A stretch of DNA of 64,000 nt from Botryllus schlosseri (Eukaryota): the NCBI GenBank assembly GCA_051294905.1, contig CM119377.1, forward strand, positions 28,954,001-29,018,000, written 5' to 3'. Numbering within the stretch: the stretch's first letter is position 1; each line of letters starts with the position of its first letter. Position numbers and translations under genes: made by a program. The notes under the pieces were generated by a model. It saw nothing but the letters and a program-made list of their open reading frames with translations. It searched no databases and had not been told where the DNA came from. Shown one piece after another: positions 482 to 61,369 of this stretch.

Positions 482-505
482 ATTGGAGTATTTGGTTGTA
501 TTAAG
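482..505 (+). other. SL exon copy at the 5' end of E1
   Basis: ATTGGAGTATTTGGTTGTATTAAG, preceded by a stuttered partial copy (470-481). Confidence 0.85.
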
Positions 506-667
506 GTAGCAACCGGCGTAAGTATACTAACGGCTATTTCAGATTCAAGGAGCGTACCGGAGCCGATGAGGCATTAGCTACTTACCGTAAACCTCAGTTT
601 TAACCTAGCGATTTAAGTAGGCTACTTCTTCCTTCCTTCTTTTCGTCAACGTTCGGACTACATTTTC

Positions 668-855
668 GAGTCTCCTTCAGACTCAATCCTTCTACCTCTC
701 CAGGACTCGACTCCTCTTCGTGGGTCGAGTCTTGACTCTCTCTCTTGAGTCAGGACAGGACTCGATGAGTCTTTTCTTTGGAGACTTGACTCTCTCTGGA
801 GTCAAGCCTCCACTTTCTCCTTTCTCTCGCGCCTCTCCCTTGAGACGACGAGAGA
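668..855 (+). repeat. GACTC/GAGTC hairpin array in LINE 5' UTR
   Basis: Five or six inverted GACTC..GAGTC pairs. Homologous arrays lie at about 12340-12560(-), 22395-22600(-), 57370-57540 and 61085-61295. Confidence 0.75.
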
Positions 856-862
856 CTTTAAC

Positions 863-2980
863 CATAGTGTCCTATATGGTGTCGACACAAGCAAATCGCA
901 CGGTTCAATGAAATTGTATCACGTCACAGTTTCCATTTGGCTACAGGCAATTTGACGGTGATTTTTGACCGACTTTCCGAGCATTAAATTTGATGAATCG
1001 GGTATCAATCGAAAGCTGACGCTGTACTGCTTGCGAAAATATAAATTTTATTCCACTCATGGCCCTGGAACCCCCACAATCTGCCCCAAATTATTCATTG
1101 TCGAGTAGATTGGCAGTGTGACGCAACAATGATGTCTGGCGAAACGAGAGACTAGCTCAAGAGCAAGGATGCGGCCGAGCGGCGAGAGTGGGATCAGCTG
1201 ACGTCGCCGCAATAGCAATGTGCAACCGCGCCACAGAGAAACGCTGCGCTGTTGATACTTTTTCTATGCGTTTCGCTAAAAGCGAGCACACACCAGCCTT
1301 TCCTTGACTTGTAAGGGTAGAACTGGGTCCACGGAATGTATTAGGGCCCTACCAATTTTCGCGCAATATCCTTGAGCTGATAGAGATATGTAGGCTACGT
1401 CTAAGTAGTCTACATTGGATATGTCAGATTATTATGATATCGATTGCCTTAGCCCGCTTGTTGCGTAGGGCTCCAGAGATGCGTGGCGCTGTTGATACTT
1501 TTTCTATGCGCTTCGCTAAAAGCGAGCACACACCAGCCTTTCCTTGACTTGTAATGGTAGAACTGGGTCCACGGAATGTATTTGGTCCCTACCAATTTTC
1601 GCGCAATCCTTCAGCTGTTAGAGATATTTCTAGTAAGAAAAAGATACTTTCAAGTAATAAGATTCACTCAAGACAGCAAATTTAGATAATGTAAATATAT
1701 CATATTGTAGTAATACAACTACAGTGTTGAGTTTTCACTCTAGTCCCAATAAGCACCACGTCGGTGACCTTGCCAAATTCCGAGAAGGCGAGAAAGTGCA
1801 AACTCTGTTGGGCCGAATGGACAATGGACATTCAGTTATTCACAGATGCGAAAAAAATACTGCAAATCCGTTTTACGTAAGTTACATTAGGAATATATAT
1901 ACAGGCTACAGAATGAATATATTTCAAATATCTGTGATACCACTGTATTACTTTTGACGCAAAAGGTCCCCGGCATTCAAAAAAACTATTTGGTGATTGA
2001 AAAATGCTAAACTAAATTCCAACGTCAATGTTTATAGTGATATCAGATATATTCCAATGAAAAACAAAGGTATGAATTTGGTGGTAACATTTTGGAATCA
2101 TTTGGCAGGTATGGCCCGCAAGCTTTCTAGTAACGGATTGAATCCGGACAGCGATACCAGTTTAATTCGACACTCCTGCTGTTAAACTTTATTCAACAAT
2201 CAACATTTTACCTGCTGCATTCGCGGACCAAGTCCTACCCATACGGATCAAATAAAAGCTTGTAATGTATGCTCAATTGCTCATGCTCAATGCTCCGTGC
2301 TCACACTTAACCATAAAAGCGACTATAGAAAGTATCGACACCCGCCATCAACAGCGCGACGTGTCTCTGGAGCCCTACGCAACAAGCGGGCTAAGGCAAT
2401 AGATATCATAATAATCTGACATATCCAATGTAGACTACTTAGACGTAGCCTACATATCTTTATCAGCTGAAGGATATTGCGCGAAAATTGGTAGGGCCCT
2501 AATACATTCTGTGGACCCAGTTCTACCCTTACAAGTCAAGGAAAGGCTGGTGTGTGCTCGCTTGTACCGAAACGCATAGAAAAAGTATCAACAGCGCAGC
2601 GTTTCTCTGTGGCGCGTTTGCACATCGCTATTGCCGCGACGTCAGCTGATCCCACTCTCGCCGCTCGGCCGCATCCTTGCTCTTGAGCTAGTCTCTCGTT
2701 TCGCCAGACAGCATTGTTGCGTCACACTGCCAATCTACTCGACAATGAATAATTGGGGGCTGATTGTGGGGGTTCCAGGGCTGCGAGCGGCATAAAATTT
2801 ATATTTTCGTAATCAGTGCAGAGTCAGCTTTCGATTGATACCCGATTCATCAAATTTAATGCTCGGCAAGCCGGTCAAAAATCACCGTCAAATTGCCTGT
2901 AGCCAAATGGAAACTGTGACGTGATACAATTTCATTGAACTGTGCGATTTGCTTGTGTCGACACCATATAGGACACTATG
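863..2980. mobile_element. Non-autonomous foldback DNA transposon (P-like MITE), ~630-bp inverted arms
   Basis: Termini CATAGTGTCCTATATGG / CCATATAGGACACTATG; 7-bp TSD CTTTAAC (856-862, 2981-2987). The left arm has a ~240-bp internal duplication. No transposase ORF. Confidence 0.85.
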
Positions 2981-3332
2981 CTTTAACCTTACTTTACCTT
3001 CGATCGTTTGACGTCTGCTGTCTCGATCGAACGATCTCTCTAGCCGTCTAACAACGCCCTTGCAAACGGCTTTGTGCCTACTAAAAAGCGCTTTCAAACA
3101 ACGCTACTGTCCTGCATTTTAGAGTGGGATTAGCAACCATAGTACATCGCTATAGTCTGTTATCCTAGGCTCTTGTGTAACAAGCAGCGAAAACAACAGT
3201 AGTGACAGCTCCCAAGAATCAGGTTAGCTAGACCAACCTTCGGTAAACTGTAGCAAGCCTTCACACACAGATACCTGAAGGTTCAAGATACAGATAGTAC
3301 AAACAGAAGCCGACAACGAAAGAGCAACAAGG

Positions 3333-4500
3333 ATGGCATACGCAAACGCAGTACAAAACATTCAAGCACAACGCGTAACATATGGACTTAGACCGAGATC
3401 TATAGACATAATAGCGCCATCCGAAACGACCGCCTTTCAAATAATCGAGGTGCTAAGATCACACCCACAGCTCTCTAAACACCCGGAAGACATTCTCTCC
3501 ATGTTTCAAATAGGGAGAAACACCTTTAACTTAACTTTCACTGACGCACAGCCAGCTGAGCAGATGAAACAAAACTTCCTTCAACAAGGCGAGAATGGGA
3601 TTGCCACTGATAATGACACCATTTACTTTGAATATCCCAGACTGCCGACAGTTAAGATCAACGTTAGAGCAATTCCTACGGAAACAGAAGAGGAAGAATT
3701 CAGAAGGAAGTTTATATCTTACAACTGTGGCACAATCAAAGAGACAACCAAAATCTATCATCGGGGTACAAATATACAAAACGGCTATCGACAAATATCG
3801 GTCGAAAACTATCAGCTGGGCAAGATCCCAACCTTTGTATATCTTAGGAAGGCACCTTGCAAGGTGTATCTACCAGATACAGATGAGACGCACCAAAAAT
3901 GCTACAAATGCCTCCAACCAGGGCACGGATCCAGAGAGTGTCCCAATCAGACGGCGTGACTACTGTGCAGTAAGCAAGTAAAAACCAATACAAAATCAGG
4001 TACCGGTGCGAGAAGGAAAATACTTCAACACGAGCCGATGTCTGGCTCGCAATACACAAAAACGGCTGCCGCGCAGCAATCACAATTGGCGTCTCAGGGA
4101 CCCGGACAAGACGAAAATACACAACTAGACATAGAAATCGAAAATAAAACACACGGTGAGAAACCGAATATCGATGAAGGAAGTAGTGAGGTAAACGATA
4201 CTGAAATTGAAGACGTCTTCAGGCAAATAGACTCTATGTGCGAAGAAGAAAGCGTGCAGAACAAAACAATAATCAAAGCTACAGACGCAATTGAGAGCAG
4301 CAACGAAGATGAAGGAGAACTGACTATAGTAATCAGTGAAGAGGAAATAGCAGGCCTGAAATCCCCGAGAAATCGAAAGGAGTGATAGCGCACATGTCAT
4401 GTAAAGTCTTTGAGGAACGCTCCTTTACCCAGGAAGAAGAATCGCCGAACAAACGCAATAATGACCAGAGAAGTCCAACTGGGAGACCGAAACCTAGTAA
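3333..4500 (+). pseudogene. E1 ORF1 (RNA-binding, CCHC zinc knuckle), disrupted after aa 208
   Basis: MAYANA..TYGLRPRS N-terminus and CYKCLQPGHGSREC knuckle. A TGA replaces the Cys of the second knuckle. An acidic low-complexity tail follows in other frames. Confidence 0.85.
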
Positions 4501-4533
4501 ACATGAAAAGTAGCGCGCCCATTCCAAAATCCG

Positions 4534-7500
4534 ATGGATAACAAAATTTTATCCTTGAACGCCAATGGGATGGAAACCCATTGGTTCAAAATTAAAAACC
4601 TACTCAAAAGGGACAAGAATTGGAATATAATATGCATTCAAGAGACCCATAGAGTAGACATAACTAAAATAAGGAAATGGACAAAACAGAACGAATTCTT
4701 ATATTATCCAAACCACATAAATGTCGGGCAAACTTGGATAGATACAGAAGAGGGAAAATAACACTACTATAGAGGGACCAGTAAAATTATCAGAAAGGAA
4801 ATGGGAACTAAATTCGGAATCACCCATCGGATTATAAAGGAAAATAGGGCACAAGCGCTACAATTAACTGATCACGAAACGGAAGAGGACACGACAGTAT
4901 ACAATGTATACGGTCCCAGTGACGTCGGAAGACATCAAACGGATTTTTATAAGGAACTTATAACGGAAATCGAAAAAGACCCAGACAACGCAATAGTCTG
5001 CGGTGACTTTAATATAGTCACCGAGAAAATAGCTTCTAAAAACACCGAGAATTTTAAATTCACACTAGCGGCCAAAGTCTGGAAATCCTTCACGGAAATA
5101 TATAAAATACGAGACGTATGGCGTTGGCGAAACCCAACTAAAAAACTATACACAATAATGAAAGCAAGGCAATCAAGACGGATTGACAGGATATATGTGT
5201 CGCAGAAAAATCTAGCGAGAGTCAGAAGCACGACCTACATACTTAACACTATAAGCAGATCATGTCTTCATGCAAAAAATCCATATTGCCAAACCCTTCA
5301 ACATCCAATGGGGTAACCGGGTCTGGAAGAATGATGCCAGACTCTTCCAGAACGAAGACCTGCACGAAATAATAAAAAGGACCCACCAGACATGCACGGA
5401 AAACAAGCCGTTTTTCAACGATGTGTATGACTGGTGGGACTACCTGAAAAAACAAATGAAAACGCAACTAAAGAACTACAGCTGGTTAAAAAAAGGCCGA
5501 AAACGACAACAAGATAAAAGCTTTGTATGAAAAAAATACACCAAATCCAAAACGACCCAAACCCGCAAGATAGCCCCCTTGAGGCCGTAAAAGAACTAAA
5601 GAAAATAGAGGAGGAAATACGCCACCAATGTAACCTCCATAAGCTTAGGGACCTCGAGGAGGACGAAAAACCTACAAGGTTCGAAAAACTGAAGCAGAGA
5701 AAGGAAAGTAAGATATTGAGCGAGGTAATAAATGAAAGAGGTACCACGATCACCTCTAAAGAGGGAGTATTGGGAGAGGTAGAAGACTTCTACAAAAACC
5801 TCTGGGCCAAGGATGTGAATGCAAATAATGATATACAAATGCAATACCTGGATGAAATCAGACACATCAAAATCACTCCTGAAGAAAGAGAGGGGCTAAA
5901 AACCCAGATAGATCACGATGAAATAAAAGCCGTAATCCAGAAAATGGAATATGGTAAAACACCAGGACCAGACGGCTTATCGAGGGAATTTTACGCCAAT
6001 TACTATTATATCCTAAAGAACGATATACAGGAGGTAATTAACAATGCTTACCTATTCGGTGGAACATGCAAAACTTGGTCAGAAGGCATAACCACAATGG
6101 TCTATAAAAAGGGAAGCCCCCAGGATTTAAAAACTGGAGACCTATCACCCTCTTAAACACTGATTATAAAATCCTCACCGCAATATTGGCAGCAAGACTT
6201 AAACCCATCCTCCCAAACATCATCAATGGAACACAGAAATGTGGGATTCAGGGAAGATGCATAACAGATATCTTGAGAAATACACGAGCCGCGACCCAAT
6301 ACGCGAAAGAACGAGGAAAAGGTCCGACCAAGAGAAAGCCTTTGACAAAGCCTTTGACAAGGTAAACCATAATTATATCTATAAAATCTTGGATATATAC
6401 AGTTTTCCCAACCACTTCACTAAACTGATTTAAAATATCCATCAGGAAGCTAAAAGCAAAATCCTAGTGAATGGAGCCTTAACCCAAGAAATACCTCTTG
6501 AAAGAGGAATTAGGCAGCGGTGTCCGCTTAGCATGACCCTCAATGCCATTTGCAGCGACCCCCTCGCCAGAAGAATAGAAAAAGTCCACACGATCGAAGC
6601 ATTTAGGTTGGGAAAATACAATATGAAGATCCAGCAGTACGCGGACGATCTCACGGGCTACCTGACCAAAGAGGGGATATTGGGAAAATATTCCGAGAAT
6701 TCGATAAATATGAAAGAGCGACGGGGCAGAGGCTAAATGCGGGGAAAACCCAAATTCTTCACATACAGCCGAAAGGAAACTTCCCAACCCAAAAAATGCA
6801 GACCTAAAAAAGCCTAGCATAGAAATACTAAGACAAATATTCGGAATAAATCAGGTGATAGACACCTGGAAAAAGAGAACAATGAAAATCAAGAAAATAG
6901 TCAACGCCTACAGGCACAGAATGGATTGAAAAAAACATCCTAAACTCGTTAGCCGCAAGGCAAATAATATATAATGCGCGAGTAATAGCGATGATAAAGG
7001 AAGTACAGAAAGAAATACAGAAGATGTATTTCTACTTTCTCTGGCAACCAGAAAAAATGGAGGCTATAAAAAGGAAGACCCTAATATCAGAAAAGAGGAG
7101 GGGAGGAATGGAAATGCCGGATGTTTAGGCAAGAGTGAAAAGCCTGTGAATTAGAAAATATCCTAATTCTTAGAGAAATGAAAAAACCAACAGAACTATG
7201 GCACAAATATGCCATTTATGAGACGGGAACCAGAATAAAAGAAATTAACAAGAATCTTTATAGGAATACAGGACCCCACAAATTCCCGACCCCGCCCACC
7301 TGGGTCGAGAATCTGGAGATGAGCAGACGTATAGATCTCGATGAGGAGGAGTGGAGAGAGGCCACCCATAAGTCCTTGATAAGGCAATAAAAAATTTGAA
7401 TGAAATTAGGCCAGACATCAGAACGGAAAAAGGGGAGGAAATTAATTGGAATAAAATAAACCAAACGAAGTATGACACCCAAAAAACTATTACAAATGAA

Positions 7501-7990
7501 GAACTCATCATAAACTATAGAACAGCGCAGAACGGGTATATATTTGGGAACAAAAAAAGAAATCGAAACACAACGCACACAAATTTAGGCAAACCATTGA
7601 TATTAAATTAAACTGTGAATTCTGTAATGAAAGAAACGATGACGTAGAGCATATTCTCACGTTATGTACACATCTTAAAAAATTACGGAACCAAATAGGG
7701 AACATTGGGGAAAAAACTGAATAAAAATTAAATCCTATATAATATCGGAAATTGCAAGCTAGATTGGACCATACTGTCGATCTACAAGAAAGCCGCTATA
7801 AATTTCAAAATAGCACTGGATATCTATAACAGAATGATTACAGATGAAAATATAACAAAAAACATATTGAGAAAAATGAAAAGAAGATTAAATCGAGTAA
7901 CACCAGACAAACAGACGGACAAACTAATCGCAAACATCGCGAAGTTACGATCTGGTCCGCGAAGTTACGATCTGGTCCACTCTAACCTAA
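4534..7990 (+). pseudogene. E1 ORF2: APE endonuclease + reverse transcriptase, multiply frameshifted
   Basis: EN motifs SLNANG, CIQETH, GDFN, IDRIY. RT motifs KTPGPDG, DQEKAFD, GIRQRCPLS, QYADD. Confidence 0.9.
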
Positions 7991-8185
7991 TGAAAAAAAA
8001 TAATAAAACACAATAACCCCTAAAGCTGGGCTCCAAATGAAAGCTTGGCCAACCCAACAAAAAAAGTGACAAAAATCCCTTCCGGGGACGAGGGGGAGGC
8101 CCGACAAAAACGGCCCAACCACTCGCGGCAGGTGGGCAGCGTTTGGAGCACAAATGGAAATATTGCCTCCTTTTGCCGTGATGAC

Positions 8186-8271
8186 ATTGGAGTAGTTGGT
8201 TGTACTAAGGTATGGAAAAACCTGACAGAACCAAAAATTCCATTGTAGTTGTTGGCTGTACTAAAGTACGG
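8186..8271 (+). other. Two SL-like exon+donor copies in the E1 3' UTR (56-bp period)
   Basis: 8186-8209 ATTGGAGTAGTTGGTTGTACTAAG|GTATGG (22/24 to SL); a more degenerate copy at 8242-8265 is followed by GTACGG. Confidence 0.7.
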
Positions 8272-8329
8272 GAAAACCTGACAGAATCAAAGCTAGAGGA
8301 GCTAACAAGCTTAATAGAGTAAAATAAGA

Positions 8330-8470
8330 TGAAACCGTTAAACTAAGTTAAGAAACCGTTTTGAAATTCGAAACCGTTAAACTAAGTTAAGAAACTGCTC
8401 GAAACCGTTAAACTAAGTTAAGAAACTGTTTGGAAATTCTTAAGAAACTGTTTGGAAATTCCTAAGTTAA
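8330..8470 (+). repeat. Short degenerate tandem repeat in the E1 3' UTR
   Basis: Repeated GAAACCGTT(AAACTAAGTTAA) and GAAACTGTTTGGAAATTC units. Confidence 0.6.
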
Positions 8471-8617
8471 AAATAAAAAAAAAACATAAAAATAAACAAA
8501 ATGTGTAGTAAAGACCCCGAGCGGGAGGTAGCCCTATTCTATGAGAGGGCTGCCAAACGCCAGAGGGCTGCCAAACGCCGGCGGATGCCGGGAGCCGTAA
8601 AAAAAATAAGCATCGGC

Positions 8618-11465: not shown

Positions 11466-12721
11466 TTTATTTGTATCGACATTTTATAGCAATTCTGCCC
11501 GGTGTGTAATTCTCAATTGATACCTGTCTATATCCGTTAAGGATATTTGTACCTCGGTGATATATCAAGGTGATCTCCTTGATCGTACCACATTGGTAGC
11601 TGGTAAATTTCTTCCGGATTTCGGCTTCCTCCACTTCTGTCGGGACCGCTCTAATATTTATTTTAAACGTGGGAAGTCTGGGTTGTTCGATGTGTATTGT
11701 ACCTTTTTCCGTGACAATCCCGTTGTGTGTTGTGTCCAGAAAGATCCTTTTCAGTCTTTCTATCGGTGCGTCGGCAGGATACGTTAGATTGTAAGTGTTC
11801 CTGCCTAATTGGAACAAAGAAAGGATGTTGTCTTTGTGTTCAGCGAGTGTTCAGTGCGTTCTTATTGCATCTATGACCTCAATCGCTGTTATCTCTGTTG
11901 GTGTGAGCAAGCCCAAGGATCTAGGTCTGAGGCCATAAGTGACCCTTCGATTGTTCATACCTTGCAGCGCGTGTGAGTATGCCATGTCTGTTGTAAGTGT
12001 ATGTTAGTTCCTGTTAGAGCCAGGCAACTGCTGGCGTCTGGTTTCTGTGTTCGTTCCCAAATACTTGTATCTGCGGCGATAGTTCCTGCTGTGCTGTGTA
12101 GTTGTTGGTTTGCTGCTCTGTGCTAGGCAGGCCGCTATCGATTTGTTGTTTCTCGTAGCCTATATACTGCTGCGCTGTTGTAAACTGCGTTGTTTAGCGG
12201 TGCTTTAGAAGCATTGTGAAGGTTTTTAAAAGGCGTTTCTGCGCGCTTTGTTAGAAAGATACTGCAGTTTCTGGTTTCGCTGGCCGATCGTACGAGCACC
12301 GTCCAGACGGTTTCGTAGCGCGTTAGTAATTTAGGTAGGGAAGCCAGACAAGTCTCTCGACGTCTCGAGCGAGACGCGCGAGAGAGGAGAAAGTGGAGAC
12401 TTGACTCTCTAAAGAAAAGACTCAACGAGTCCTGACTCGAGAGAGAGAGTCAAGACTAGAAGAGGTAGAGAAAAGACTCACCAAGACTCGACCCGCGAAG
12501 AGGAGTCAAGTCCTGCGGAGGTAGAGGGTTTGAGTCAAAAGGTGACTCGAAGTGGAAGTTCGGCGACGAAAAGAAGGAAATGGAAGTAAGTATGTTAGCC
12601 TATGTAAGTCAAAAAAGATAACTAGTAATTACGGTTAGGGTAAGACTAGACTACTGTCTCAGCGGCACCGGATCTCCTTGTTGCACCTGAAAAAGCCGTT
12701 AGTATACTCACGCGTTGCTAC
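11466..12721 (-). mobile_element. E4: 5' portion of an E1-family LINE (5' UTR + partial ORF1), 3' part missing
   Basis: Starts GTAGCAACGCGTGAGTAT, homologous to E1 directly after the SL. Has the GACTC hairpin array. ORF1 MAYSHA..TYGLRPRS starts near 11985 and matches E1 ORF1. Confidence 0.85.
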
Positions 12722-12945
12722 TTTTTTTGGGGGGGGCTTTCCGTATTCGCTGCCTTTGTTCGACCCTCTTTTAGATGTAGGGTCGCTTCCAGGTCAGGAT
12801 TTTTATTACACATTATTTATTAACTCAGGATTTTTATTACACATTATTTATTAACTAAGGTGACTGGTTTGAAATTAATATAACTTTTTGTTTTTGATTT
12901 TCATGCCGTTTAGTATGCCCGAGCTCTCAAGGGAGTGCGAAGGCA

Positions 12946-13172
12946 CATACCTTACTGCAACACAACACTCCAATGGCCAGGATGGGTGGGTTTCTCATTT
13001 TGCCTCTTTCGGACAAAGGCTGCCCACAAGAGAGTACGAAGCTACATACCTTACTGCAACACAACACTCCAATGGCCAGGATGGGTGGGTTTCTCATTTT
13101 GCCTCTTTCGGACAAAGGCTGCCCACAAGAGAGTACGAAGCTACATACCTTACCACAACCAAATACTCCAAT
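12946..13172 (-). repeat. 99-bp tandem repeat in the E3 3' UTR, each unit carrying an SL-like exon + GT donor
   Basis: Exon-like copies 13149-13172 (ATTGGAGTATTTGGTTGTGGTAAG, 22/24), 13050-13073 and 12951-12974 (ATTGGAGTGTTGTGTTGCAGTAAG). Each is followed by GTATGT. Confidence 0.8.
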
Positions 13173-13339
13173 AGGTGGAGTGGGTAGGTTTTGCATGTTT
13201 CTGCTTGTGGACCAAAGGCTGTTCACCCGCCGCGAGCAGGTCAGAGGTTTTTGTTCGGCCCCTCCCCTGAAGGGATTTTAGCCATTTTTCTTTCTTAGGT
13301 TGTTGTTGGGTTAAACAAACTTTCATTTGGAACCCAACT

Positions 13340-15420
13340 TGATTAGGGGTTTTAAGATATTTCCTGCAAAATCTTGTTATTTAGGTTTTGTAACTCATTA
13401 CAGAGGAGAGTTTTGTTTGAGAGTCTCTTTTTTGCTGTTGTTGCGATTCTGTTGTATATGTTTTTTGTCAAATTGGCTTTATCGTATTCATTTTCGATGG
13501 TTCGGTCTAATACAAGTCGATGTTTGAGCATTTGGGTTTTATACATTGTGATTATGAGTCTTGATTGTTTTTGGTTGGTTTCAGTAGGTTTTGCGTAAAG
13601 TATGTTGTCTCTCTGTAGTGATGTTTTCTTCCCGTTTTTCCGCAAGAGATTTTCGAGGAGGGCGAGGATTGGATATCTGGCGCCCCGGGACTGAACATTT
13701 TTGTGATGGTCCGATTACGTGCGTCATTGATTCTTTGATCCTGTTGGCCAGGATTTTTGCCATAATTTCATAGTCGCAGTTGGAAAGCGATATAGGACGC
13801 CAGTTATCCAGGCGTTTCATGTCTCCTTTTTTGGGGATTAATATCACATGCGATTCGCCCCAAGTTTCTGGTGTATTTGTGAAGCATAACGCGCTATTGT
13901 AAATTTCTGAGAGACTGTTCTTAAGAGTTTCAAAAAAAGCGGTATAGAATTCTGGCGAAAGGCCATCTGGTCCCGGTGTCGTAGATGTTTTTTGCGAGCG
14001 TAGTGCCGTTTTTATTTCCTCCTCGGTTATTACTTGATCTTGTAGTTCTTGTTGCTCCCGCGGGATTTGTTTTTCAAGGTCTTGAACCATGTTGTCGATG
14101 CTTCCTTCGGGTGCGCTGTGCGCGATGCCCCAGAGGTTATGGTAATAGTTGCGTGCGTGTGTGAGGATGTTATTTTTTCCACGTATTGGCTCTTTGTTGT
14201 TGTCGGTGAGCTCCGTGATACTTTTTTCTTTTTGTTTCATTCTCAGTTGATCGTAGAACTGTTTCGCTGGTTTTTCTTGATCTTCCATACTGTTTTTATA
14301 TTCCGACTCCACTAAGAAGTCTATTTTTGCCTTTTCAAGGGCTTTTAGTTCCTTGATTAGCTTATTTCTCATATCATTTGATATGTTTGGGTTCTGTAGT
14401 GATTTCTTTCTTTGGTTTGTTTCTTGTGTTTCTTTTTGTTTTTTCTCTATGCCGTATTGGATTGACGTTATTCTGATTTTGTTTTTCAAGGCGTCCCACC
14501 ATTGCCCTATGTTTGGATAGAATGCTTTCTCTAGTTCGAAGAGTTTGATCTCGTTGCGTATGATAGCTCTGTATTCCTGGTGTTCAAGGTGGGCTGCGTT
14601 ATTTTTCCAGCTGCCTTTGCCCCACTTTTCCAAGTGTTTTGATTTTAGATGCAGTTCCACATAGTGCGTATGGTCCGAGATTGGATTGACCTTGTAGGCT
14701 ATGTTCTTTACATCACTTACCAGTTCTTTCCCTGTGTAGATTCGGTCTACTCTTCGCTTGTTTTTTGGCGAGTTCGACATGTACACTTTTGTGCTTGGAA
14801 AGTTCCATCGGTATATGGCTATGACGTTGTTAGTTTTTGTGTATTGCTTCCAGACGGTCGATGCTGGAACTTCGGTAAAAGCGTCTGGGCGCTCAACGTC
14901 TATCGCTTTTGTTACGATATTAAAATCGCCTAGGATGATCCGTACGTTCGTGCGTCTTGGTTTTCTAGTTTGCTCACCACATCCTTATAGAAGTCTAGTT
15001 GTTTGTATTTGCCCGATGGTGGACCATACACATTGGTAATTGCTATCGACTCTTCGCGTTCTAGGTGTATAATTAATTGTTGTGCGCGATGTGTCGTGAT
15101 GATCTCGTGCTGTACGTCAGAGTTGTCAGGGAGCCAGCTTTCCTCAACAAGTATTGCTGTTCCCTGATAGTAGTGCTTGGGGTCCTCCTCGTCTTGCGGC
15201 CTCCACTCACCTCCACTCGTCATCCCTATCTAACGCATTAAGGTATATCTTGTATCCCAAGTTTGTTGCCCAAGTCGTGAGTTGGTGCGTTGTGACTTTA
15301 TGGGTTTCTTGTATACATAGAATGTTGAAGTTTTTTGTTTTAACAAATATGTGGAAACTATTCCAGTGTGCTTGTATTCCATTTATATTTATTGTCGCAA
15401 TGGTTGTTGGTGGAACGCCG
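13340..15420 (-). pseudogene. E3 ORF2 (endonuclease and N-terminal RT), deleted in the RT
   Basis: LCIQETH, GDFN, VDRIY, TPGPDG and NWRPISLSN motifs; the 401-aa ORF 14786-13581 then jumps to C-terminal sequence. Confidence 0.85.
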
Positions 15421-15612
15421 AATTTGTTATTTGAAGAGGTTTTGCAGGTCCTTGTCTGCCACTCCTTGCCTGCGTTGTTTACTCATTGGCTTTGGAGGAA
15501 CTGCTGGTCTGTTCCTGTTTATTTGGACGTTTTCCTCCGAACTGTTACTCCTATTTCTTTTAATAGGTGATGATTGCAGATTTCGGAGGTTGTCTAACGA
15601 TACCCTGTAGGG

Positions 15613-16779
15613 CAGGGGTGGGCAAACTTTTGAGCTCGCGGGCCGCATTCAACATCTGAATCCATTCGCGGGCCGCACTATATAAAATGGGAATATAAGT
15701 CAAAATGCAATATTGGTATTTGATTATATAGTGAGGACATGCAGATAACATATGTGCTTATTTAAAACAAAACAAACAGTGCTTTGATGATATCGTACAC
15801 GGGTCAGAAAGATAGTGGCGAGATTTTATAGGCTGGCCGACTTCAATAACCAATTTGTCAAAACTATAGAGATGAAAGTCGGTTGTTCCGATTCTTAGAA
15901 CAGGATTAAAATTTAAATCTGTGAGCAGCGATCTGTTCATAGATTTACTAATTTCACTTATGGTTCAGTTCCTGGACACACAATGCTCACAGAATCATAA
16001 CTATGTTAGCTTCAAACACGCTTTTACTTTGTGTAGATAAAATATAAATGCCCCAAGTCTACGCATAAAGAGAACGAATCTACTCAATACACGCGCGAAT
16101 CGGTTTGTATAAGCACATCACTGATATAATTAAAACAGGAGTGGTCAATCTGAAATCCCACTCGTGATCCGAATTATGTCAATCTCGTTTAGGATTTCTG
16201 TGATGTTAGCAGTTGAAACCTTTCGAACGGTGTGGGCCTTGAGATCGGGCTGTGGCGCCCGAAATTGAACATAAAAAATAATATAGGAAGTATTTACCTT
16301 AGAACAGTGGTTCTCAAACTTTTTAAGACACGTCCCCCCACCTTATGATGGTGAAAGATTTGGCGCCCCCTTATCGTCATATCACAAAACGCAACCAGAT
16401 TGCTAGCAACCTAACGGATAGTTTGATGGCATGGAAGGTTAATGGATGAGAGATTTTTAAATGTGAAATTGCGACAAAATACAGAATAACAATTATGAAA
16501 CCGCTGGTAAATCGCGCGGAGCGCGAAAAATTTTTTCAGTTGAGCTCAGATTCGCGCCCCACTTCTGATGCTTTCACGCACCCCAGTTTAAGAACCACTG
16601 TCTTAGAATTATCATGGTGAAATACACTAAGAAATAGTTTAATCAAGTCCCTGCACTATATTGATTTTTAGTACGCATTCTATCAATATTTTTATAAAGT
16701 TTCTTTAGACTCTCGCGGGCCGCACAGAACGATGTTGCGGGCCGCATGCGGCCCGCGGGCCGTAGTTTGCCCACTCCTG
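15613..16779. mobile_element. hAT MITE in E3 ORF1
   Basis: TIRs CAGGGGTGGGCAAAC / GTTTGCCCACTCCTG; TSD CTGTAGGG (15605-15612, 16780-16787). Confidence 0.85.
16305..16600. mobile_element. Small hAT MITE nested in the previous MITE
   Basis: TIRs CAGTGGTTCT / AGAACCACTG; TSD (C/T)CTTAGAA. Confidence 0.8.
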
Positions 16780-16799
16780 CTGTAGGGTATGGGGTTTGA

Positions 16800-17854
16800 C
16801 AAGGATTTTCGCCTTGATCGTAAGGCTGGCGAAGTTGGGGTAGGTATCTTCGTGCTTTCCTGGAAGGTGTTGGGATATATCTTCCCACATCGATTCCGCC
16901 AACGTATCTCCTACCAAGTGTGTGCTTTTATCGATAGTGTTTCTAGGGTTTTTGGTTTTACTATCATCACTGTCAGGTGTTTCCTGGATTTTGAGTTCAC
17001 CTGGAGTGTTTTCTTCGCTTTCTTCTTCCGTGCTGTCATTGCTTTGTTGTTCTTTGTTTTCTTCGTCAGATCTGTTTATTATACATTCGTTGCCATCACT
17101 TTCGTGTGTTTTTTCTTCTTCTTCTTCTTCGTGCATTTGTTCGTTGTTATTTTCAGTGGTGTTATGTATTTTCGCTTCAATTACGATTTTGTTGTGCTGC
17201 TCCTCAATTGTAGGATAGTTTTCCTTCAATTGTGGGCAGACTACTCTTTTATGGCCTGTCTGTTGACAGTGAAGACATCTCAAGTCGTTGTTACAATTTC
17301 TAGCGATGTGTCCGTGCTGTAGGCACGTTACATATCGCTACTGTTTGTTCTCCCGGTGGAAGAAAAACTTTGCAGTTAAAACCGCGTATCTTGAGATACT
17401 GCGGTAGCCTGCCTGCTTTGTAATCAGCAATGAGCACTTTTCTGTACCCATTGTGATACTGTGTTTTGCTGTGGTTCACTCGTAATACTTTGATCACTTT
17501 GCCGCACTGTTATAGGGCTAGTAGAATTGCTATTTCAGAATCCGTCGCTTCCGTTGGGACGGCGCGTATGTTTATAATTTACAGAGGCTCACTAGCGTCT
17601 TTGATTCTTAGGGTGCCATTGGCTGATGGTATGCCATTCTGGCACGCTGTGAGTATGTTATTCGTAATGGTTTGTGCATCCGGTGTATCTTTAACTGTAA
17701 TAATAAAGGTTTCGTAGCCAATTTGGTACATGGAATCTATATTATCCAATAGAGACTGCAAAGGCTCATACGCTAGTACGGCTTGAAAGACCTCGCTTCC
17801 TTGCGTATTGTTCGGGATTTCCACGTCTAGCGAGCGTGGTCGCTGTCTTTTCAT
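16800..17854 (-). pseudogene. E3 ORF1 main part (continues to ~15430 beyond the MITE)
   Basis: MKRQRPRSLDV N-terminus, YHNGYRKV and CLHCQQTGHKRVVC knuckle. Confidence 0.8.
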
Positions 17855-18813
17855 GTTGTAGTTGTGGAAGGAAACTATTGTTTAGTAGAATACGCTTCTG
17901 TACCTGACTGCTGGCTTGTTTCTACACTGTTTTGGCGTCGGTGTAGAGATGCTGTAGAGCGTTTTCTAGAGCGTTTTTCCGCGCTTTGCTGAAAGCGAAA
18001 CCGTAGTTTCGGTCTGCGAAGGATCGTACGATGACTGTCTACACCAGTGGTTCCCAACCTTTTACGGTATTGGGGCCAAATTTAGAATTTCAGAGTACGG
18101 TCGGGGCCGCACGAATACCAGGGCAATGAAACGGACCCAAAATAGTCATCAAAAAATGAAAATTGGCAATGTTCCGATCAATCGATCGAAGCCATTGGCC
18201 ATTGTTATGGTCATTGTGTCGCTGCGCTGCCATTAGAACAATCGACCTTTGGTGGTAATTTCGGAGCAGTTTTATTGCCCTGGCGAGATTTCAATTCGTA
18301 TTTTTGGAATCAGTACGACAGTAGCTTTCAAATTATTCGGACGATTGGGTCGTGCGCTGTAGGCTGCTTTTGGGGCCGTTTAGTCAGTCCGGTTTTATTA
18401 GCTAAACGCGCTAAGCGCGAAAATTTTCTGTAATTCATAATTGAATCCGTCAATATGATTGGGAATCGCATATATATTGCTATCAATTTTTATCCTCTCT
18501 CTACTCACGTAATCAGTTTCAAAGGTAGGGCCGAGGGAGGTGTGTTTAAAAGGGTATGGGACCCCTCAATAATAATTAAACATCTCCGGGCGTATATCCG
18601 TTGGCAGGAATGAAAGAGCACTTCGTGAGCCTCTCTTCTCCAGAAAAAACTATGGTCTCGGGCTCCCATAGGGTGAAAAACCTGCCCCTGTCACCTTGTT
18701 CGCTTTATCACGAAATTAGCTGCACCGTTTAGTGAGCCAGCGCGAAGCGCGAAATTTTCGATAATTTATGATAAAATCGGTCAATATTATTGGGAACTGC
18801 ATATATATTGCTA

Positions 18814-54422: not shown

Positions 54423-54638
54423 CCGGTACTACTGTTTCGTCGTCATGATTCAGACATGAACTTCCAGTGTCATGTTGATGATTTGCTTACAAGGGGAATG
54501 TGAATAAGTTCAGCTAGTTTGTGGTCAAACGGTATAGTACCCATGCACCAGAACACAAACCCTCGAATTGTGGCAGCTGCGTATGTGATCAGATCACGAA
54601 GATTTCGGTAGCCTACGGGTAATTCGTAGCAGTACCGG
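54423..54638. mobile_element. Possible small TA-target MITE
   Basis: 8-bp TIR CCGGTACT flanked by TA; weak evidence. Confidence 0.25.
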
Positions 54639-56078
54639 TACTACTAAATTCCATTGCAATCATAATTAAATTCCGGGTTTTTCAAAGCGTCCAAGATCCT
54701 TCCGGAGTGCAGCCATAGGTAATTTGATACGAAAAGTGTATTGTAAGTAGCGAATACCAATTGGCTAATCCAAGACACAGCGCAAGCATGGCCGAAGGCT
54801 AAGCCGAAGCATTCACTCGATGGCCGACGAGTCGGCCGACGTGGGTGTGCAATCTGTGCATGCGCAACAAAATTCTCTCGTTCGTCGGCCGAATCTCTCG
54901 AAAATGGGCCCATCGGCCGTGCATGGAAACGCAGTAAATGTGAAGTTTGCAACCGCGTCATCTAACACCCTGAACTTTTGTCGCAGCCTTTCTCGCCGAA
55001 ATTCCAGACGTCAAACACACTGTTTGCATACTGTTTGTTGATACTCGACTAACTGTCTGATATTTGTAGCAGTATGGTGATTGCCCTATCTACTGTCAGA
55101 GTAGTAATAACACGTCCCGTAACGCTCCAATTTCGTTACATGGCACATTTCTTCGTTATTCGATTAGTTCTAATTTGTTACCAGCAGTTTCATTAGCTTC
55201 GCAATTCGCAATTTATTTGTGATGGAATAAGACCAGTGATTCAAATGGGTTGTGGCACGAAATTCGGCCACCTGGTAATTTATTAATTTTAGTTGCGTTA
55301 AATCGTGTTCGAAACCAGCTGACATGTGCAAAGTTGAATATTGTTGGCACTACTGTGTTAGGTGAGAGGATGGCACCATATTATCAAACTCGGATAACTA
55401 GATTAATTCTAGTCTGATTAACGTAAATTCGGGCAAAATGCCAGTAATTTAATTTTACTCTATTTAGCGACATCCTTCTTCGCTCTAATTCCATTTCGAA
55501 TTTGATTTGTGAAATATTTCTGCTTCAAATAATTATAATCTTATCTGTGAAATTACAATTTTAATCTAATATGGACTAATTTTTTAGATGTAATTATAAT
55601 CTAATTGGGAAAAGCTGAAAAATCTGAAGTTATCCAAGTCTGGTTATTACGTCATTAACCCTACTCCCACGGTCGGCCGCCAGGCCAAATTCCAAATATT
55701 CAACTTGAATGTTTCTTATGTACTGTCTTGTGTCTGTTTCGTTGCATTATTTTTGTTAATATACACGTCGTGTTTAAATCTACATACTGACGACTAATAT
55801 TCTGGCTATTAAGGTGGTAAAAGATCAGTCTTTTCTTTGTCCGACTCCGTTCATGTAATACAAGTCAGGTAGGACACTTTAGAAGGCAGGAGACTTGAGA
55901 AACACCTAGTTGACGAAATAGCAAAACGGTTTCACGATTCCAAGCTAGGGGGATTCAGAACCTACCCTAGACTTCAAAAATACCAAGGATATTTTACAGT
56001 GTTCATCTCGAAACACCACACACCACACACAGCATAATAACATTTCTAGGACGTTTCAAATTAGCTCTACCGCCCAAA

Positions 56079-56600
56079 TTGAATCCTAGAATGGTATTGA
56101 TAGACGGTGCACTTGCATTGTGGAATGCAATGCTGCCCGTCTATTGTGGTGAAACTAGATTAAAATATTACGAGCGGGTCTGTCGGATCGTAACGGGCGC
56201 GGCTCATGAAGGTGACATGGATCTTACTTTTGTCCTCAATTATATGAGTCATTGCATGAAAGCAGCATCGCTTATGTGTAAAAGCATTTCATCAGTAAGT
56301 ACTGAAAGAAAGTCATGTACTGGATAAGTCTATTGTTTTTGTCCAGTACAATTGAAGAATTGGATTCCATCATTTGGGATTTGTGTGGCAGTGGCATCCT
56401 TCTTCCGCGCCAGAAATCCGAAGGTGTTTTGTTGTATTACAGGAGTCTGATCGAACACCGAACACCAAAGCACAAGCACAAATCGAGTGTCTTCCTCCAA
56501 CTAGTGGAACGAGGAATTCGATCCACACGCTAACAATGAAGATTTTGTTCCAATGTGAGTTCGCTAGACCGGAAGCAGGAGTTGGAGTTGCCATGTTTGG
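56079..56600 (+). pseudogene. Possible degenerate DNA-transposase fragment (MULE/NOF-like)
   Basis: Broken ORFs with D..ALWNA and a degenerate (C/Y)xSH-MK-like segment; recognised by pattern only. Confidence 0.25.
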
Positions 56601-57086
56601 CAAGATATGAAAAACTTATCGGGGAATTTAAAAACAACAAGCAATATAAAGAAGGAAACGACGCGGACCAGTGGATAGAAATAATAAATAATGATAAAAA
56701 TACATAGGCCTACTTGAACGAAATTGTATCAAGTTATAATTGACCGGATTTGTCACTGCTATGGACCAGATTTTTCACTGCTATGGATTGTTTATAGTCA
56801 GAGAAACTAGCCATTGCGAGGAGACCGCATTTACGTCCACCGCGTCAACAAAATACAATGGAAATGTTTCATTGCAGGAATCAGGTAACTATAAATCGAT
56901 ATAGCCAATCATTTACCCTTATACTACGTCATTTCATTTTAAGCGACTAAAATACGGAGAATGGGCCAGCAGTCAAGTTCGCGGGTATTATGATAGAGTA
57001 GATTTGTGTAGTTCTCTACAGTCTGAATAATTGTTTAATTTTTCTGTTCCATATATATACGGCAGGACGGAGTATGGACCGGAGCC

Positions 57087-60000
57087 GGAGTATTTGGTTC
57101 TGTTAAGGCCGCGCCAGCGTGAGTATTAACTGCTTTTTCAGATTCGAAGACTCGTCGACTGAGCCGCTTCGGCTATTGTAGCTTAGATTTACCGTAAAGA
57201 TTAGATTTAACGTATTGTACCTGTGCCGTAACCAGGTAAGAACTAGTGCCGTAACCAGGTTAGAACCTCCAAGGCTAAATTGTGACTGCTGCTCTGCCGT
57301 ATCTTCGCCGGCAGACAGCAGTCACTTGGGCTACCTCTACTTTACCTCCTTCTACTCTCTTTGCCGTCGACGATCTTCGAGTCTCCTTTAGACTCAACTC
57401 TCTCCAAGTCTTGACTTTCTCTCTCGAGTCAAGTGTTGTCGAGCTCTCCCTCTCCGAGACTTCGCTCTCTCTCTCTCGAGTCTAGTCTTGGTGAGTCTAC
57501 CTTCGCTCTCGCGCCTCTCCCTTGAGACGTCGAGAGACTGCTTTCTTGAACTCGAGTGAGGTTTCTTGAACTCGAGTGAACTCGCCTGACGTCAGCCGTC
57601 GGACGAGTATCGTTCGATTCACAGTGCCGTCTGAGCGCGCAGACTACGCCTATCGAGACACGGAGACAGTAGTATCGATTTCTCGAGCGTCTGGAAACGC
57701 CTTGCTTTGCGCTCTATAGCAAAGCAAAAATAGTATGCAAACGCTCTAACAGGACGCGATAACCAGCGAATAACCTACGGCAACAGGCCACGATCACTGG
57801 ATATAACGACACCACCAAACAGCGAAACAACAGAAGTGATAGATGCCGTTATCACACACCCTAAACTCAAACAATACAGGGAACACATCGCCTCCATCTT
57901 TCGAATAGGCAGAACGACGTACAATATATCCTTCCACGAACATGCACAGGTGGAAATGATACGCGAAGAGTTCCTGGATCAAACAATCACGGGAATAAAC
58001 ATGACAAATGGAACGATGTACGTACAAAAGCCGAGGCCACCTGCGGCACAAATAAACATCAGAGCCGTACCAACGGAGGTGGAAGAACAAGAAGACACAA
58101 AATCGCACAGTACAAATGCGGCACGGTGCAAGAAGTCAAACTAATCTATCACAATGGTACTACCCTCCATAACGGGTACAGACAAGTAACAATAGATGAT
58201 TACGTACCGGGAAGACTTCCGCCCTTCATATACTTGGGACAAGCACCCTGTAAGGTCTACCCACCGAACAATGAGGTAAATGAAACGTGCTTTAAATGCT
58301 TGCAGAGAGGACACACGGCAAGCAGAGAGGACACACGGCAAGCCAATGCCCTAACATGACAGTATACTTCCTATACAAACAAACGGTCACAAATCAGAGG
58401 AAAATACTAAAGGTCGACGAACAAATCACACCAACGGACGTGGAAGAACTACATGAACCTGAAAATAACAACGAAGAACAAAGCCCAACCTCTGCATCCT
58501 TTGATACAGAGGTTGGGCTTTGTTCTTCGTTGTTATTGAGGAGACAGAGATTGAGGAAACAGGAGAGGAAGAAAAAGATGATAATGAAGGAGAAGAAGAA
58601 GAGGACGAAATAGTAGAAGACTACTTTAACCTAGAGCAAAATTCACAAACACCAAGCGAACTTGATACAACGATCATACCAGGTTCACAACACGAAAGCG
58701 AAACTGAAGAACTGCAAATCATCACAAGCGAGGATGAAACCTAAACACAGCAAGATGAAACTCAAGGCAGTAAAAAGCCAAAACACACACTAAATAAAGA
58801 TAGAAATAACCAAACAAAGGTTCGAGGTCAGTCGATTCACGGAAAGCGAATTCTTTAGTGCAGCACAACGCTCACCAAATAAAGGAAATAGTGACGCACG
58901 TAGCCCAACTTTGCCAACGACAAGTAAAAACAGACGAATGCTGGCGAAGCCGAACCCGGGCGAAGAGAAACAGAAAGCCAAAATAGTACCTTGCCCCTTC
59001 CCGCAATCAAAAATGGCTCTTGATATTATCTCCTTGAACATAAATGGAATTAATGCTCACTTGTACAAGCTTGAATGCTTATTGAAAAACAATAAAAGAT
59101 GTAATATCCTCCACAAATAGGCCCAACAGAACAACTGGATATATATCCCGGACCATATTGACGACGGACAATACTGGATAGATAGAATAGGAAACAAAAA
59201 ACATTACTACCAAGGAACCCCGATATTCGTGTAAAAAGAATTAGAGAAAAACCATACCATAGAGAACACCGACATACCATAGAGAACACCACCATGTTAG
59301 AAGATAGGAAACTAACAAAGAGGATGACCAGTCAAAGCACATATACAACGTATATGGACCGGCTGATGTGGGGAGAAACCAAACAGATGTGTTCAAAATA
59401 CTAACGCAGCGCATCGGAAACCATCCAGACAGCGCCATAATCTGCGGCGATTTCAATATAGTAACGAACCGTCTTGACTCGAAAAACAACCGAACGTTCC
59501 AACTTACACCAGCAGCGAAAATCTGGAAACTCTTCACAGAAATCTGGAAACTCTTCACAGAAACCCATAAAATAAGAGACATATGGAGATGGAGAAATCC
59601 AAACAAAAAACTATACTCAGTAATAAAAACTTTCAACTCGAGAAGAGTTGATAGAAGATCCTTATAAGAGAAATATCTTAGCCATGCGCAAACATGCAAA
59701 AAGTTAAAGAACACCTGCAACTCTTCGCACGCTAAAAAAGAAAGGCGGAAATAAACCAAGTAAGAAAACTACGAGAGGCGGAAATAAACAAAGAAAGAAA
59801 ACTACGTGATGAAATAACACGAATACAAAGAAACAGCAACAACGTCTTCGACGCAACGGACAAAATCAAAGAGCTTAAGCAGATGGAGGAAGAGAACATC
59901 ATCCACCAATGCCGGCTCAGTAAGGTAAAGGATATTGAAGAAGGCGAATAGCCGACCAAATACACTAACCAAGAACTGAAACAAAGAAAGGAAAGTAAAA

Positions 60001-60830
60001 TAATCACGACCGTAGAAACCTCCTCCGGAAAGGAGACCACAAACAGCACAGAGAGCCTACAAGAAATCGAATTATTTAACAAAACGCTGTGGGCGAAAAC
60101 AAACCAAGAAGACCACCGTATACAGAAAGACTACCTCAGTGCGATTGAAGGCATTCACATCACACAAGAGGAAACAGGATCTAAACACCAAGATCCAGAC
60201 AACGGAAATAAAAAACGCCTTATGCAGCATGGACGGGAGCAAAACACCAGGCTCTGACGGCCTGTCGAAGAAATTCTATACGTGCTTCTGGACCACAATA
60301 AAAAAACGACCTACTAGAACTAATCAATAAACACCTTCACTTTTGGAGGCTTATGCGAAACCTGGAAAACTGGAATCACGATAATGATATACAAGAAAGG
60401 ACATCCAAAACACCTGAAACACTGGCGACCAATCACACTTCTAAACACCGAATACAAATTGATAACGTATATATTAGCAAACAGACTAAAACACAACCTA
60501 CCAAATTTGATCAGCGACACCCAAAAATGTGCAATAACAAACAGAAGCATAACAGACATACTCCGCAACACACAGGCCGTCATAGAAATAGCAGAAGCGA
60601 AAAACCAAGAACTTATAATCGCTAACCTCGACCAGGAAAAGGCTTTCGATATGATTCACCATGAGTATCTATACAAAATCATGGCGATATATCTATTTCC
60701 TAAACACCTAGGACGTCTCATAAAAAATGTCTACAAATCAGCCCGGAGCAAAATCCTAGTAAACGGGGGAACAACAAAGGAGATAAACATAGAGAGAGGA
60801 ATCCGCCAGGGGTGTCCACTCAGCATGGCA
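57087..60830 (+). mobile_element. E11: E1-family LINE with SL head, truncated within RT
   Basis: GGAGTATTTGGTTCTGTTAAG head (19/21 to SL) and GACTC array. ORF1 starts near 57735, ORF2 at 59013, and the element ends at RQGCPLSMA. Confidence 0.85.
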
Positions 60831-60881
60831 ATCGAAGTTGGATCATGTCGAATGAGATCCTTTCCTAATAGGAACAGAGCC

Positions 60882-61369
60882 GGAGTATTTGGTTGTATCA
60901 AGGTCGCACCAGCGTAAGTATAACAAACGGCTTGTTACAGATGCACGGAGCGAACCGGAGCCGCTGGGGCAATAGCTAAACGTACCTAGATACCTACAGT
61001 AATAGCTAGTATTTTTCTTGTGGTAACCTAGACTAGAAAACTTCCTTCCATTTCTTCCTTTTCGTCGCCGGGTATTCACACTCACCTTCGAGTCTCCTTC
61101 AGACTCGTCCCTTCTCCCTCCTGAGACCTGACTCGTCTTCGTGAGTCAGGTCTTAAAGGAGTTTTTTCTACCTCTCCGAGACTTGACTCGTCTTCGTGAG
61201 TCGATTCTCGTTTAAGTATTTTTCTTTAGAGACTTGACTCTCTCTCGAGTCAAGTCTCTACTTTTCTCCTCTCTCGCTTGAGACGCAGAGAGACTGCCTG
61301 CTTATCTTTAGCCTAATTACCTATACGTCTTCGCCGCTGTCTAGACGGCGATCATACGATAGTCTAGCG
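60882..61369 (+). mobile_element. E12: 5' UTR of an E1-family LINE with SL head
   Basis: GGAGTATTTGGTTGTATCAAG (20/21 to SL), GTAAGT donor motif and GACTC array; interrupted by a hAT element. Confidence 0.85.

Follow-up and report, generated by a model that had tools for sequence, protein, structure and literature searches.

The 24-nucleotide (nt) spliced leader (SL) of stolidobranch ascidians, ATTGGAGTATTTGGTTGTATTAAG, is located at the 5´ end of four copies of long interspersed nuclear elements (LINEs) in a 64,000-nt stretch of Botryllus schlosseri DNA (GCA_051294905.1, contig CM119377.1, positions 28,954,001 to 29,018,000 of the forward strand), which is referred to here as the window. The structure of the insertions gives good support to the view that new inserts acquire the SL from their RNA template. 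We tentatively suggest that the leader was captured from host SL RNA and may now be encoded by the elements and inherited like the rest of the 5´ untranslated region (5´UTR). The window is rich in transposable elements (TEs). It contains approximately 10 LINE copies or fragments, which are characterized by an apurinic/apyrimidinic endonuclease (APE), a reverse transcriptase (RT) and a first open reading frame (ORF1) with a CCHC motif, together with a BEL/Pao long terminal repeat (LTR) element, a pogo-like DNA transposon and smaller elements. The repeated 5´ motif identifies the window as tunicate DNA, because GATTGGAGTATTTGGTTGTATTAAG is the published SL of the stolidobranch ascidians Botryllus, Halocynthia, Boltenia, Herdmania and Polyandrocarpa (PMC3795323, Table 1 and supplementary files). 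The heads of elements I, II and IV are designated E1, E2 and E3, respectively, element III is designated E5, and a further head is designated E4.

The window was scanned with a 22-mer composed of the SL and the next G, and up to three mismatches were allowed. Six matches were observed compared with none in 100 shuffled controls, which rules out a chance origin of the matches. Direct reading of all four sites confirmed the SL heads that had been listed in a preliminary description of this DNA. In E1, SL nt 4/6–24 is found at 485–505 and is followed by GTAGCAACC. This SL is preceded by stutters of SL nt 6–14 (AGTATTTGG / AGTATTGG at 470–486, with SL nt 6–24 at 487–505 and the junction at 505|506; plus strand). 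E2 is located on the minus strand (22751–22736) and reads G + ATTGG, TTGTATTAAG and then GTTCGC. Its SL has an internal 9-nt deletion of the unit AGTATTTGG, the same unit that is duplicated in E1. The E3 head (57067–57141, plus strand) begins with the extension ACGGAGTATGGACCGGAGCC (57067–57086), which is composed of pieces of the SL and of an internal 5´UTR motif. SL nt 4–24 follows with two mismatches (57087–57107), and the next sequence, GCCGCGCC, opens a 34-nt block that begins with GC (57108–57141). The E4 head (60871–60940, plus strand) has a similar layout, with a copy of the internal motif (GGAACAGAGCC, 60871–60881), SL nt 4–24 with one mismatch (60882–60902), and a 38-nt block (60903–60940) in which GTCGCACC follows the SL. 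SL nt 1–3 are absent from three of the four heads, since E1, E3 and E4 begin at nt 4–6. The internal motif (G)AACCGGAGCC, copies of which precede the SL in E3 and E4, has GGAG in common with the SL. Of the five heads that belong to this 5´UTR family, four carry the SL. The earlier statement that all LINEs begin with the SL was too strong, because the E5 head lacks it, no recognisable SL was seen in LINE-D (from approximately 26860), and LINE-C, LINE-F and other fragments are 5´-truncated.

Assignment to the APE-type LINEs is based on Exo_endo_phos and RVT_1 matches on the window ORFs and on the intact ORF2 of an outside relative (L121, described below). The copies are collinear in tblastn comparisons and carry the hallmarks of LINE insertions: a target-site duplication (TSD; TAAGCATCGG) and an A8 tail in element I, an A7 tail in element II, and 5´ truncation of LINE-C and LINE-F.

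Element I (485–8606, plus strand) is a full-length APE- and RT-encoding LINE with an SL head, a 5´UTR, ORF1 (3333–3959, CCHC), a broken ORF2 (approximately 4540–7890), a 3´UTR and an A8 tail (8599–8606). The TSD TAAGCATCGG is found at 460–469 and, directly after the A8 tail, at 8607–8616. The SL head lies inside this duplication and hence is part of the insert, as the preliminary description had argued. The 5´ junction is complex (428–469, plus strand): TAAGCA (428–433) is followed by G and a full SL with one mismatch (434–458), G459, and the first TSD copy. The extra G+SL+G piece (434–459) sits between two TAAGCA copies, just upstream of E1. A host gene that shares its strand with element I has its 3´ end within the first 433 nt of the window, with an acidic C-terminal tail, a stop near 304 and AATAAA near 396; the insertion is located approximately 30 nt beyond this poly(A) signal, which is an operon-like position. 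The 5´UTR of element I is interrupted by an inverted-repeat element (862–2986) with 640-bp arms of 95% identity (857–1496 and 2986–2347), internal 156-bp repeats and CTTTAAC on both flanks.

Element II (12722–22751, minus strand) consists of the E2 head (G+ATTGG^TTGTATTAAG, 22751–22736) and a LINE body (18045–12722), which contains ORF1 (approximately 17854–17330), the APE/RT region (15400–13580), the 3´UTR and the A7 tail (12728–12722). A 4.3-kb DNA transposon is located between head and body. Fused upstream of element II is a chimera whose outermost piece is a full-length copy of U6 small nuclear RNA (snRNA; 22845–22944, minus strand; Rfam RF00026, 97 bits, model positions 1–105). A tRNA-related piece (22752–22844, minus strand) lies between U6 and SL nt 1; it has an A box (TAGCTCAGTTGG) and a B box (GGTTCAAGTCC) and ends with TTTT and then AGA, and no credible tRNA was called in it by ARAGORN (with and without introns) or Rfam. 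Judged from its sequence, the array of U6, tRNA-like piece and element II is a multi-step, end-to-end template-switch chimera of the U6/L1 kind. Because the U6/tRNA-like piece is joined to G and SL nt 1, the template RNA of element II ended exactly at SL nt 1. The chimera also shows that the RT switches onto snRNAs. The extra G is cap-like, as capped templates typically leave. An SL at the extreme 5´ end inside the TSD (element I) and an SL that starts at nt 1 behind an extra G (element II) are both features of retrocopies with relic SLs. The E1 duplication and the element II chimera at SL nt 1 thus bear out the proposal that the SL is reverse-transcribed as part of the insert.

Element III (E5; 11491–12721, minus strand) has a homologous 5´UTR and ORF1 with no SL. 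It starts with (G)TAGCAACG right after the A7 tail of element II, such that the junction reads ...AAAAAAAG|TAGCAAC, and it is truncated near 11490. Element IV (E3; 57087–60833, plus strand) is a decayed LINE with ORF1 at 57734–58329 and an APE/RT region with many stops that runs to 60833. This element ends within the RT, where the E4 head region begins.

Conservation of the leader and its flank

The ORFs of the copies are strongly diverged, with ORF1 identities to E1 of 32% (element II), 43–51% (E3) and 58% (E5). Among E1, E3 and E4, the SL is 86–95% identical, compared with 77–87% for the block after the SL and 54–78% for the rest of the 5´UTR. The preliminary description had noted a near-identical SL on diverged ORFs, and both parts of that statement agree with these values. 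Mismatches to the canonical SL amount to 0/21 in E1, 0/16 in element II, 2/21 in E3 and 1/21 in E4, and each is private to one copy.

The block after the SL resembles a set of splice signals and ends 31–38 nt downstream of the SL; it is 77–87% identical between copies. In E1, this block comprises 37 nt (506–542, plus strand) that contain GT..., GTAAGTAT, TACTAAC, a pyrimidine run and CAG|AT. By sequence, these signals resemble a splice donor, branch point and acceptor, and the block is the best-conserved stretch of the E1 5´UTR. The corresponding blocks comprise 31 nt in element II (GTTCGCGTAATTATATAACGGCTACTTTCAG, 22705–22735, minus strand) and 12721–12687 (minus strand) in E5. In all five heads, the SL-less E5 included, the best-conserved stretch after the junction resembles GTAAGTAT, TACTAAC, a pyrimidine run and CAG|AT. 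The nucleotides directly after the SL are GTTCGC in element II and GTAGCA, GTCGCA or GCCGCG in the other SL-bearing heads. GT, which would correspond to the GU donor of an SL RNA gene, follows the SL in seven of eight well-preserved modules, and E3 has GC. Sequence after the SL looks donor-like (GT, GTATGT), and the only strong acceptor is located 31–38 nt further on.

Similar modules are found at the other end of the elements. The 3´UTR of element I contains ATTGGAGTAGTTGGTTGTACTAAG|GTATGG (8186–8215, plus strand), which matches the SL at 22 of 24 positions, and a second, decayed SL-like unit at approximately 8247–8270. The 3´UTR of element II contains three tandem units (12950–13172, minus strand), each of which ends with an SL-like sequence and GTATGT. 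The first unit (13172–13143) matches the SL at 22/24 positions and the next two at approximately 18/24; a sequence similar to the head block, CATACTAAACGGCAT, comes after the last unit. In both elements the modules thus continue into GTATGG or GTATGT. Sequence on either side of the module can be aligned between the two 3´UTRs, which indicates that the module is inherited. These inherited modules are still 22/24 (approximately 92%) canonical, whereas the ORF1s of the two elements are only 32% identical. Short tandem repeats are located in the distal 3´UTRs just before the A tails (8320–8450 in element I and 12800–12870 in element II).

Relatives outside the window were collected by ORF1 searches and by a search with an ORF2 representative, and were found mainly in Logan and ENA assemblies. 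Among the contigs compared (L121–L127), L121 alone has a 5´UTR with the SL. L121 is an intact LINE in an ENA contig of another assembly, with ORF1 and ORF2 identities of 31–39% and 30–42%, respectively. Its SL has one inserted base, is followed by GTATGT and lies 340 nt before ORF1; after a further 126 nt come TACTAAAC, a pyrimidine run and CAG. In nucleotide comparisons, the L121 5´UTR matches the window 5´UTRs in its SL alone. Two CRE-like sites (TGACGTCA/TGACGTCG) occur at 180–205 of this contig, approximately 200 nt upstream of the SL, and the 400-nt stretch upstream is either flank or element. SL scans of other contig sets gave nothing beyond chance matches: 120 loci in metagenome contigs, none of them with the longer SL, one Flavobacterium match in genome contigs, and none in viral contigs; a protein-based scan of viral contigs also gave none.

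The heads were also compared with SL RNA itself. RNAalifold on the heads gave only a 3-bp helix with no covariation and no conserved fold, and the Rfam scan matched U6 only, with no SL family match. The heads were rejected as functional SL RNA genes, because they have no Sm site or fold and the modules are not located in SL gene arrays.

Inheritance or renewal of the leader

We tentatively favor a leader that is encoded by the elements and passed on with the 5´UTR. The captured piece would comprise the SL exon and the start of the intron, including the GU donor, and template switching of the kind seen in the U6 chimera would probably account for the capture. An internal LINE promoter would start transcription at SL nt 1 or a few nucleotides inside (nt 4–6), and reverse transcription of the capped RNA to its end would make each full-length copy begin with the SL again. 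Purifying selection would hold the leader near the host sequence. The leader may represent a promoter or initiator module that stems from SL RNA genes. Alternatively, it may be a 5´ exon, which, with the downstream branch point and CAG, would give an mRNA that mimics a host trans-spliced mRNA. The post-SL block is nearly as conserved as the SL, which suggests that selection alone can hold such a sequence. In a rough hand count, 3 of 79 SL positions depart from the canonical sequence and approximately 17 of 150 block positions from the majority, a difference that looks marginal at best. Because GT or GTATGT follows the SL modules, this sequence appears to be derived from SL RNA rather than from an arbitrary acceptor exon. 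In SL organisms, an acceptor that has an upstream partner donor is normally cis-spliced and not trans-spliced (PMC1488885). In trypanosomatid LINEs, the first 77 nt form an internal promoter that is bound by SNAP50, a transcription factor of SL RNA genes (PMC8190864, PMC1874656).

A number of observations weigh against an inherited leader. In the window family, only 31–38 nt separate the SL from CAG, which is probably not enough for cis-splicing. The absence of the SL from E5 at the exact junction requires an extra assumption; this junction is ambiguous and could represent a premature jump from the SL AAG to a poly(A) tail. No lineage-specific SL variants were seen among the four heads, as fresh addition would likewise predict, and the head SLs are slightly closer to the canonical sequence than the 3´UTR modules of the same copies. 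The heads have no conserved SL-RNA-like fold or Sm site. The sample consists of five window heads and one outside locus (L121). Taken together, the sequence appears to fit an inherited leader somewhat better than re-addition in each cycle.

Re-addition is the mechanism that the preliminary description had proposed. LINE transcripts, including read-through transcripts, would be trans-spliced to the host SL at the start of the element, and the terminal AG of the genomic SL would serve as the next acceptor, such that head and cap are renewed each cycle. The canonical SL with only private mismatches in four copies of diverged families agrees with this mechanism, as does the start of element II at SL nt 1 with an extra G, which a capped SL would give. 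The three heads that stop at SL nt 4–6 with stutters could reflect a block of the RT near the modified SL cap. The SL is found on approximately 30% of Hydra TE Iso-Seq reads, full-length CR1 included (bioRxiv 10.1101/2024.03.13.584568), and the same interpretation has been given to partial SLs that adjoin LTR and LINE elements of parasitic flatworms (PMC12582326). In Ciona operons, the upstream cistron ends right at the acceptor AG (PMC1488885); the junction between element II and E5 and the position of E1 past AATAAA resemble this arrangement. However, AAG ranks lowest among 3´ splice sites, and the SL has no evident branch point. The TACTAAC–pyrimidine–CAG acceptor 31–38 nt downstream should be preferred, yet in no copy is the SL joined to it, and the suggestion that the terminal AAG acts as the next acceptor therefore finds little room beside a site that would outcompete it. 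The absence of dinoflagellate-type tandem relic SLs also argues against renewal, since the stutters consist of 9-nt units (SL nt 6–14) or internal-motif pieces and not of SL 3´ parts behind a full SL. On balance, re-addition by trans-splicing is disfavored by the inherited 3´UTR modules, which show a near-canonical SL (22/24) without renewal; by the G(T) or GTATG(T) after the SL modules, which resembles the donor of SL RNA and not an acceptor exon; by the element-derived sequence upstream of SL nt 4/5 in E3 and E4, together with the lack of nt 1–3 in three of the four heads; and by E5, which starts at the junction without the SL, where an un-trans-spliced precursor is not expected to start. 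We consider this mechanism unlikely, and it is equally doubtful that LINE RNA receives a fresh capped SL from the host machinery while the SL copy in DNA re-creates the signal for the next round. If renewal nevertheless took place, it would be a new way for a promoterless retrotransposon to be expressed: the LINE would be independent of a promoter of its own and expressible from any read-through transcript, like a downstream gene of an operon. In a further step, the dispersed modules of SL exon and GU in heads and 3´UTRs would donate the leader, which would link the LINEs to the turnover of tunicate SL RNA genes.

The SL could also be added by the RT at each insertion. The native RNA would start with GUAGCAAC, as in E5, and at the end of cDNA synthesis the RT would jump to SL RNA via G/GU/GUA microhomology with the donor site. 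Such jumps are seen in the window in the chimera of U6, tRNA-like piece and element II and at the junction of the element II poly(A) with E5. An RT jump accounts for E5 and for the G(T) after the SL, and it is consistent with the extra SL+G copy between target-sequence copies (434–459) and with the hopping between SL nt 4–14 and the internal GGAG motif in E1, E3 and E4. Conversely, an SL in four of five heads and in L121 is far commoner than known snRNA/LINE chimeras. End-to-end jumps land on the 3´ ends of RNAs, whereas the junction here is always the exon/intron boundary of SL RNA, and homology of the post-SL linker across families speaks for inheritance. We regard addition at each insertion as improbable, more so than renewal by splicing. 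Least probable by far is that the LINEs are specific for SL RNA genes, like SLACS/CZAR/CRE and NeSL-1, and that the 5´ SL represents flanking target DNA. SL-like sequences are indeed located near both ends of elements I and II, but the 3´ modules are internal to the 3´UTR, approximately 400 nt short of the A tail. Insertion into SL genes is contradicted by the flanks, which are the 3´ end of a protein-coding gene (E1), U6/tRNA-like pieces (element II) and the RT of another LINE (E4); by the E1 TSD, which lies outside the SL head; and by the endonuclease, which is of the APE type at the N-terminus of ORF2 and not restriction-like.

Other elements of the window

Four LINE-to-LINE junctions were observed, all of them in the same orientation: 12728–12720 (minus strand), approximately 26850, 43943, and 60834–60881 (plus strand). 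The A7 tail of element II abuts base 1 of E5, LINE-D follows LINE-C, LINE-F starts within the ORF2 of the preceding LINE, and E4 begins within the RT of E3 with 37 nt between them. The common orientation points to RT jumps from one LINE RNA to another and not to random nesting. Within LINE-D, a BEL/Pao LTR element (28155–34484) contains an open ORF of 1111 amino acids (Peptidase_A17, DUF1758) and a gag-like ORF (DUF1759). This insertion looks recent, because its LTRs (approximately 230 bp) are 99% identical and the 1111-amino-acid ORF is open.

The DNA transposon in the 5´UTR of element II is pogo/Tigger-like (18046–22346), with CCAGTGRTTCCCAACC ends and HTH_psq and DDE_1 ORFs (19162–21140, plus strand). 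The 5´UTR of E4 runs to 61369, where it is interrupted by an element that resembles a miniature inverted-repeat transposable element; its end, CAGTGGTCCCCAAC (61370 onward), is related to those of the pogo-like transposon and interrupts the 5´UTR approximately 25 nt further along the homologous sequence. The LINE 5´UTRs are composed of arrays of short GAGTC...GACTC inverted repeats, which are located at 600–857, 12600–12350 (minus strand), 22620–22400 (minus strand), 57350–57540 and 61060–61300. Six of the ten TGASTCA (AP-1-like) sites in the window fall in LINE 5´UTRs. These sites and the inverted-repeat arrays may represent internal enhancer sites or RNA hairpins. A promoter array of AP-1 sites was considered and rejected, since TGASTCA shows no enrichment across the whole window. 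A tandem repeat with units of approximately 79 bp is located at the window end (63426–63959).

Comparison with known systems

LINEs must rebuild their own 5´ end and promoter in each copy, and the SL represents a ready-made capped leader in animals that trans-splice. A host SL on tunicate LINEs, whether inherited or renewed, ties the genome parasites of a chordate to its SL machinery. SL-headed LINEs explain many dispersed 'SL pseudogenes', and, as a practical warning, SL-gene finders and SL-based mapping of 5´ ends in ascidians will pick up LINE heads.

SLACS, CZAR and CRE1/2 of trypanosomatids and NeSL-1 of C. elegans are non-LTR elements that are specific for SL genes and have a restriction-like endonuclease. 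They resemble the window elements in that SL sequence flanks the LINE copies and the element RNA can start with SL nucleotides. However, they sit inside SL RNA genes, whereas the window elements are dispersed and have an SL that lies within the TSD, and their endonuclease is of the APE type. Chimeric retrocopies of the U6/L1 type arise by template switching of the LINE RT; their small RNA is attached at its 3´ end and is not passed on to further copies. Element II corresponds to this type, with a full-length U6 and a tRNA-like piece with TTTT joined to its 5´ end. The SL heads differ from it, because their junction is the end of the exon and not the 3´ end of SL RNA, and the SL recurs across families. 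Short interspersed nuclear elements (SINEs) have heads derived from the small RNAs tRNA, 5S and 7SL, and from U1/U2 in SINEU. The resemblance lies in a retroelement 5´ end that stems from a host small RNA and serves as a functional head; in the window, the element is an autonomous LINE and the donor would be SL RNA.

Relic SLs in dinoflagellate retrogenes, which represent recycled cDNAs, were reportedly described by Slamovits and Keeling in 2008. In both cases, a retroposed SL marks the 5´ end of the copy. In dinoflagellates, re-use of the AG within the SL leads to tandem truncated relics and the carrier is a host gene, whereas no such series is found in the window and the carrier is an autonomous LINE (for dinoflagellate relic SLs, see also PMC12014239). 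SL-bearing TE transcripts have been reported in Hydra, including full-length CR1 (bioRxiv 10.1101/2024.03.13.584568), and partial SLs next to LTR and LINE elements have been reported in flatworms, for which trans-splicing was proposed in passing (PMC12582326). These cases share with the window a host SL at the 5´ ends or on the transcripts of retrotransposons in an animal with SL trans-splicing. The Hydra and flatworm reports contain no junctions, TSDs or conservation, whereas the window LINEs have a donor-like GT, a splice-signal block and 3´UTR SLs and come from a chordate. The Pr77 internal promoter of trypanosomatid LINEs (L1Tc/ingi) is bound by TBP and SNAP50 (PMC1874656, PMC8190864). It resembles the window heads as a short conserved 5´ module in diverged LINEs that is tied to the transcription machinery of SL RNA genes. 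Unlike the window heads, whose promoter role is predicted, Pr77 is not the SL sequence itself.

No description of SL-headed LINEs in tunicates was found among the papers searched. We know of no earlier LINE head derived from SL RNA, and an encoded leader would be, to our knowledge, the first. Compared with these known systems, the window defines a chordate LINE group with a head of SL exon and GT, a conserved splice-signal block and SL modules in the 3´UTR, a combination of features that none of the compared systems has.

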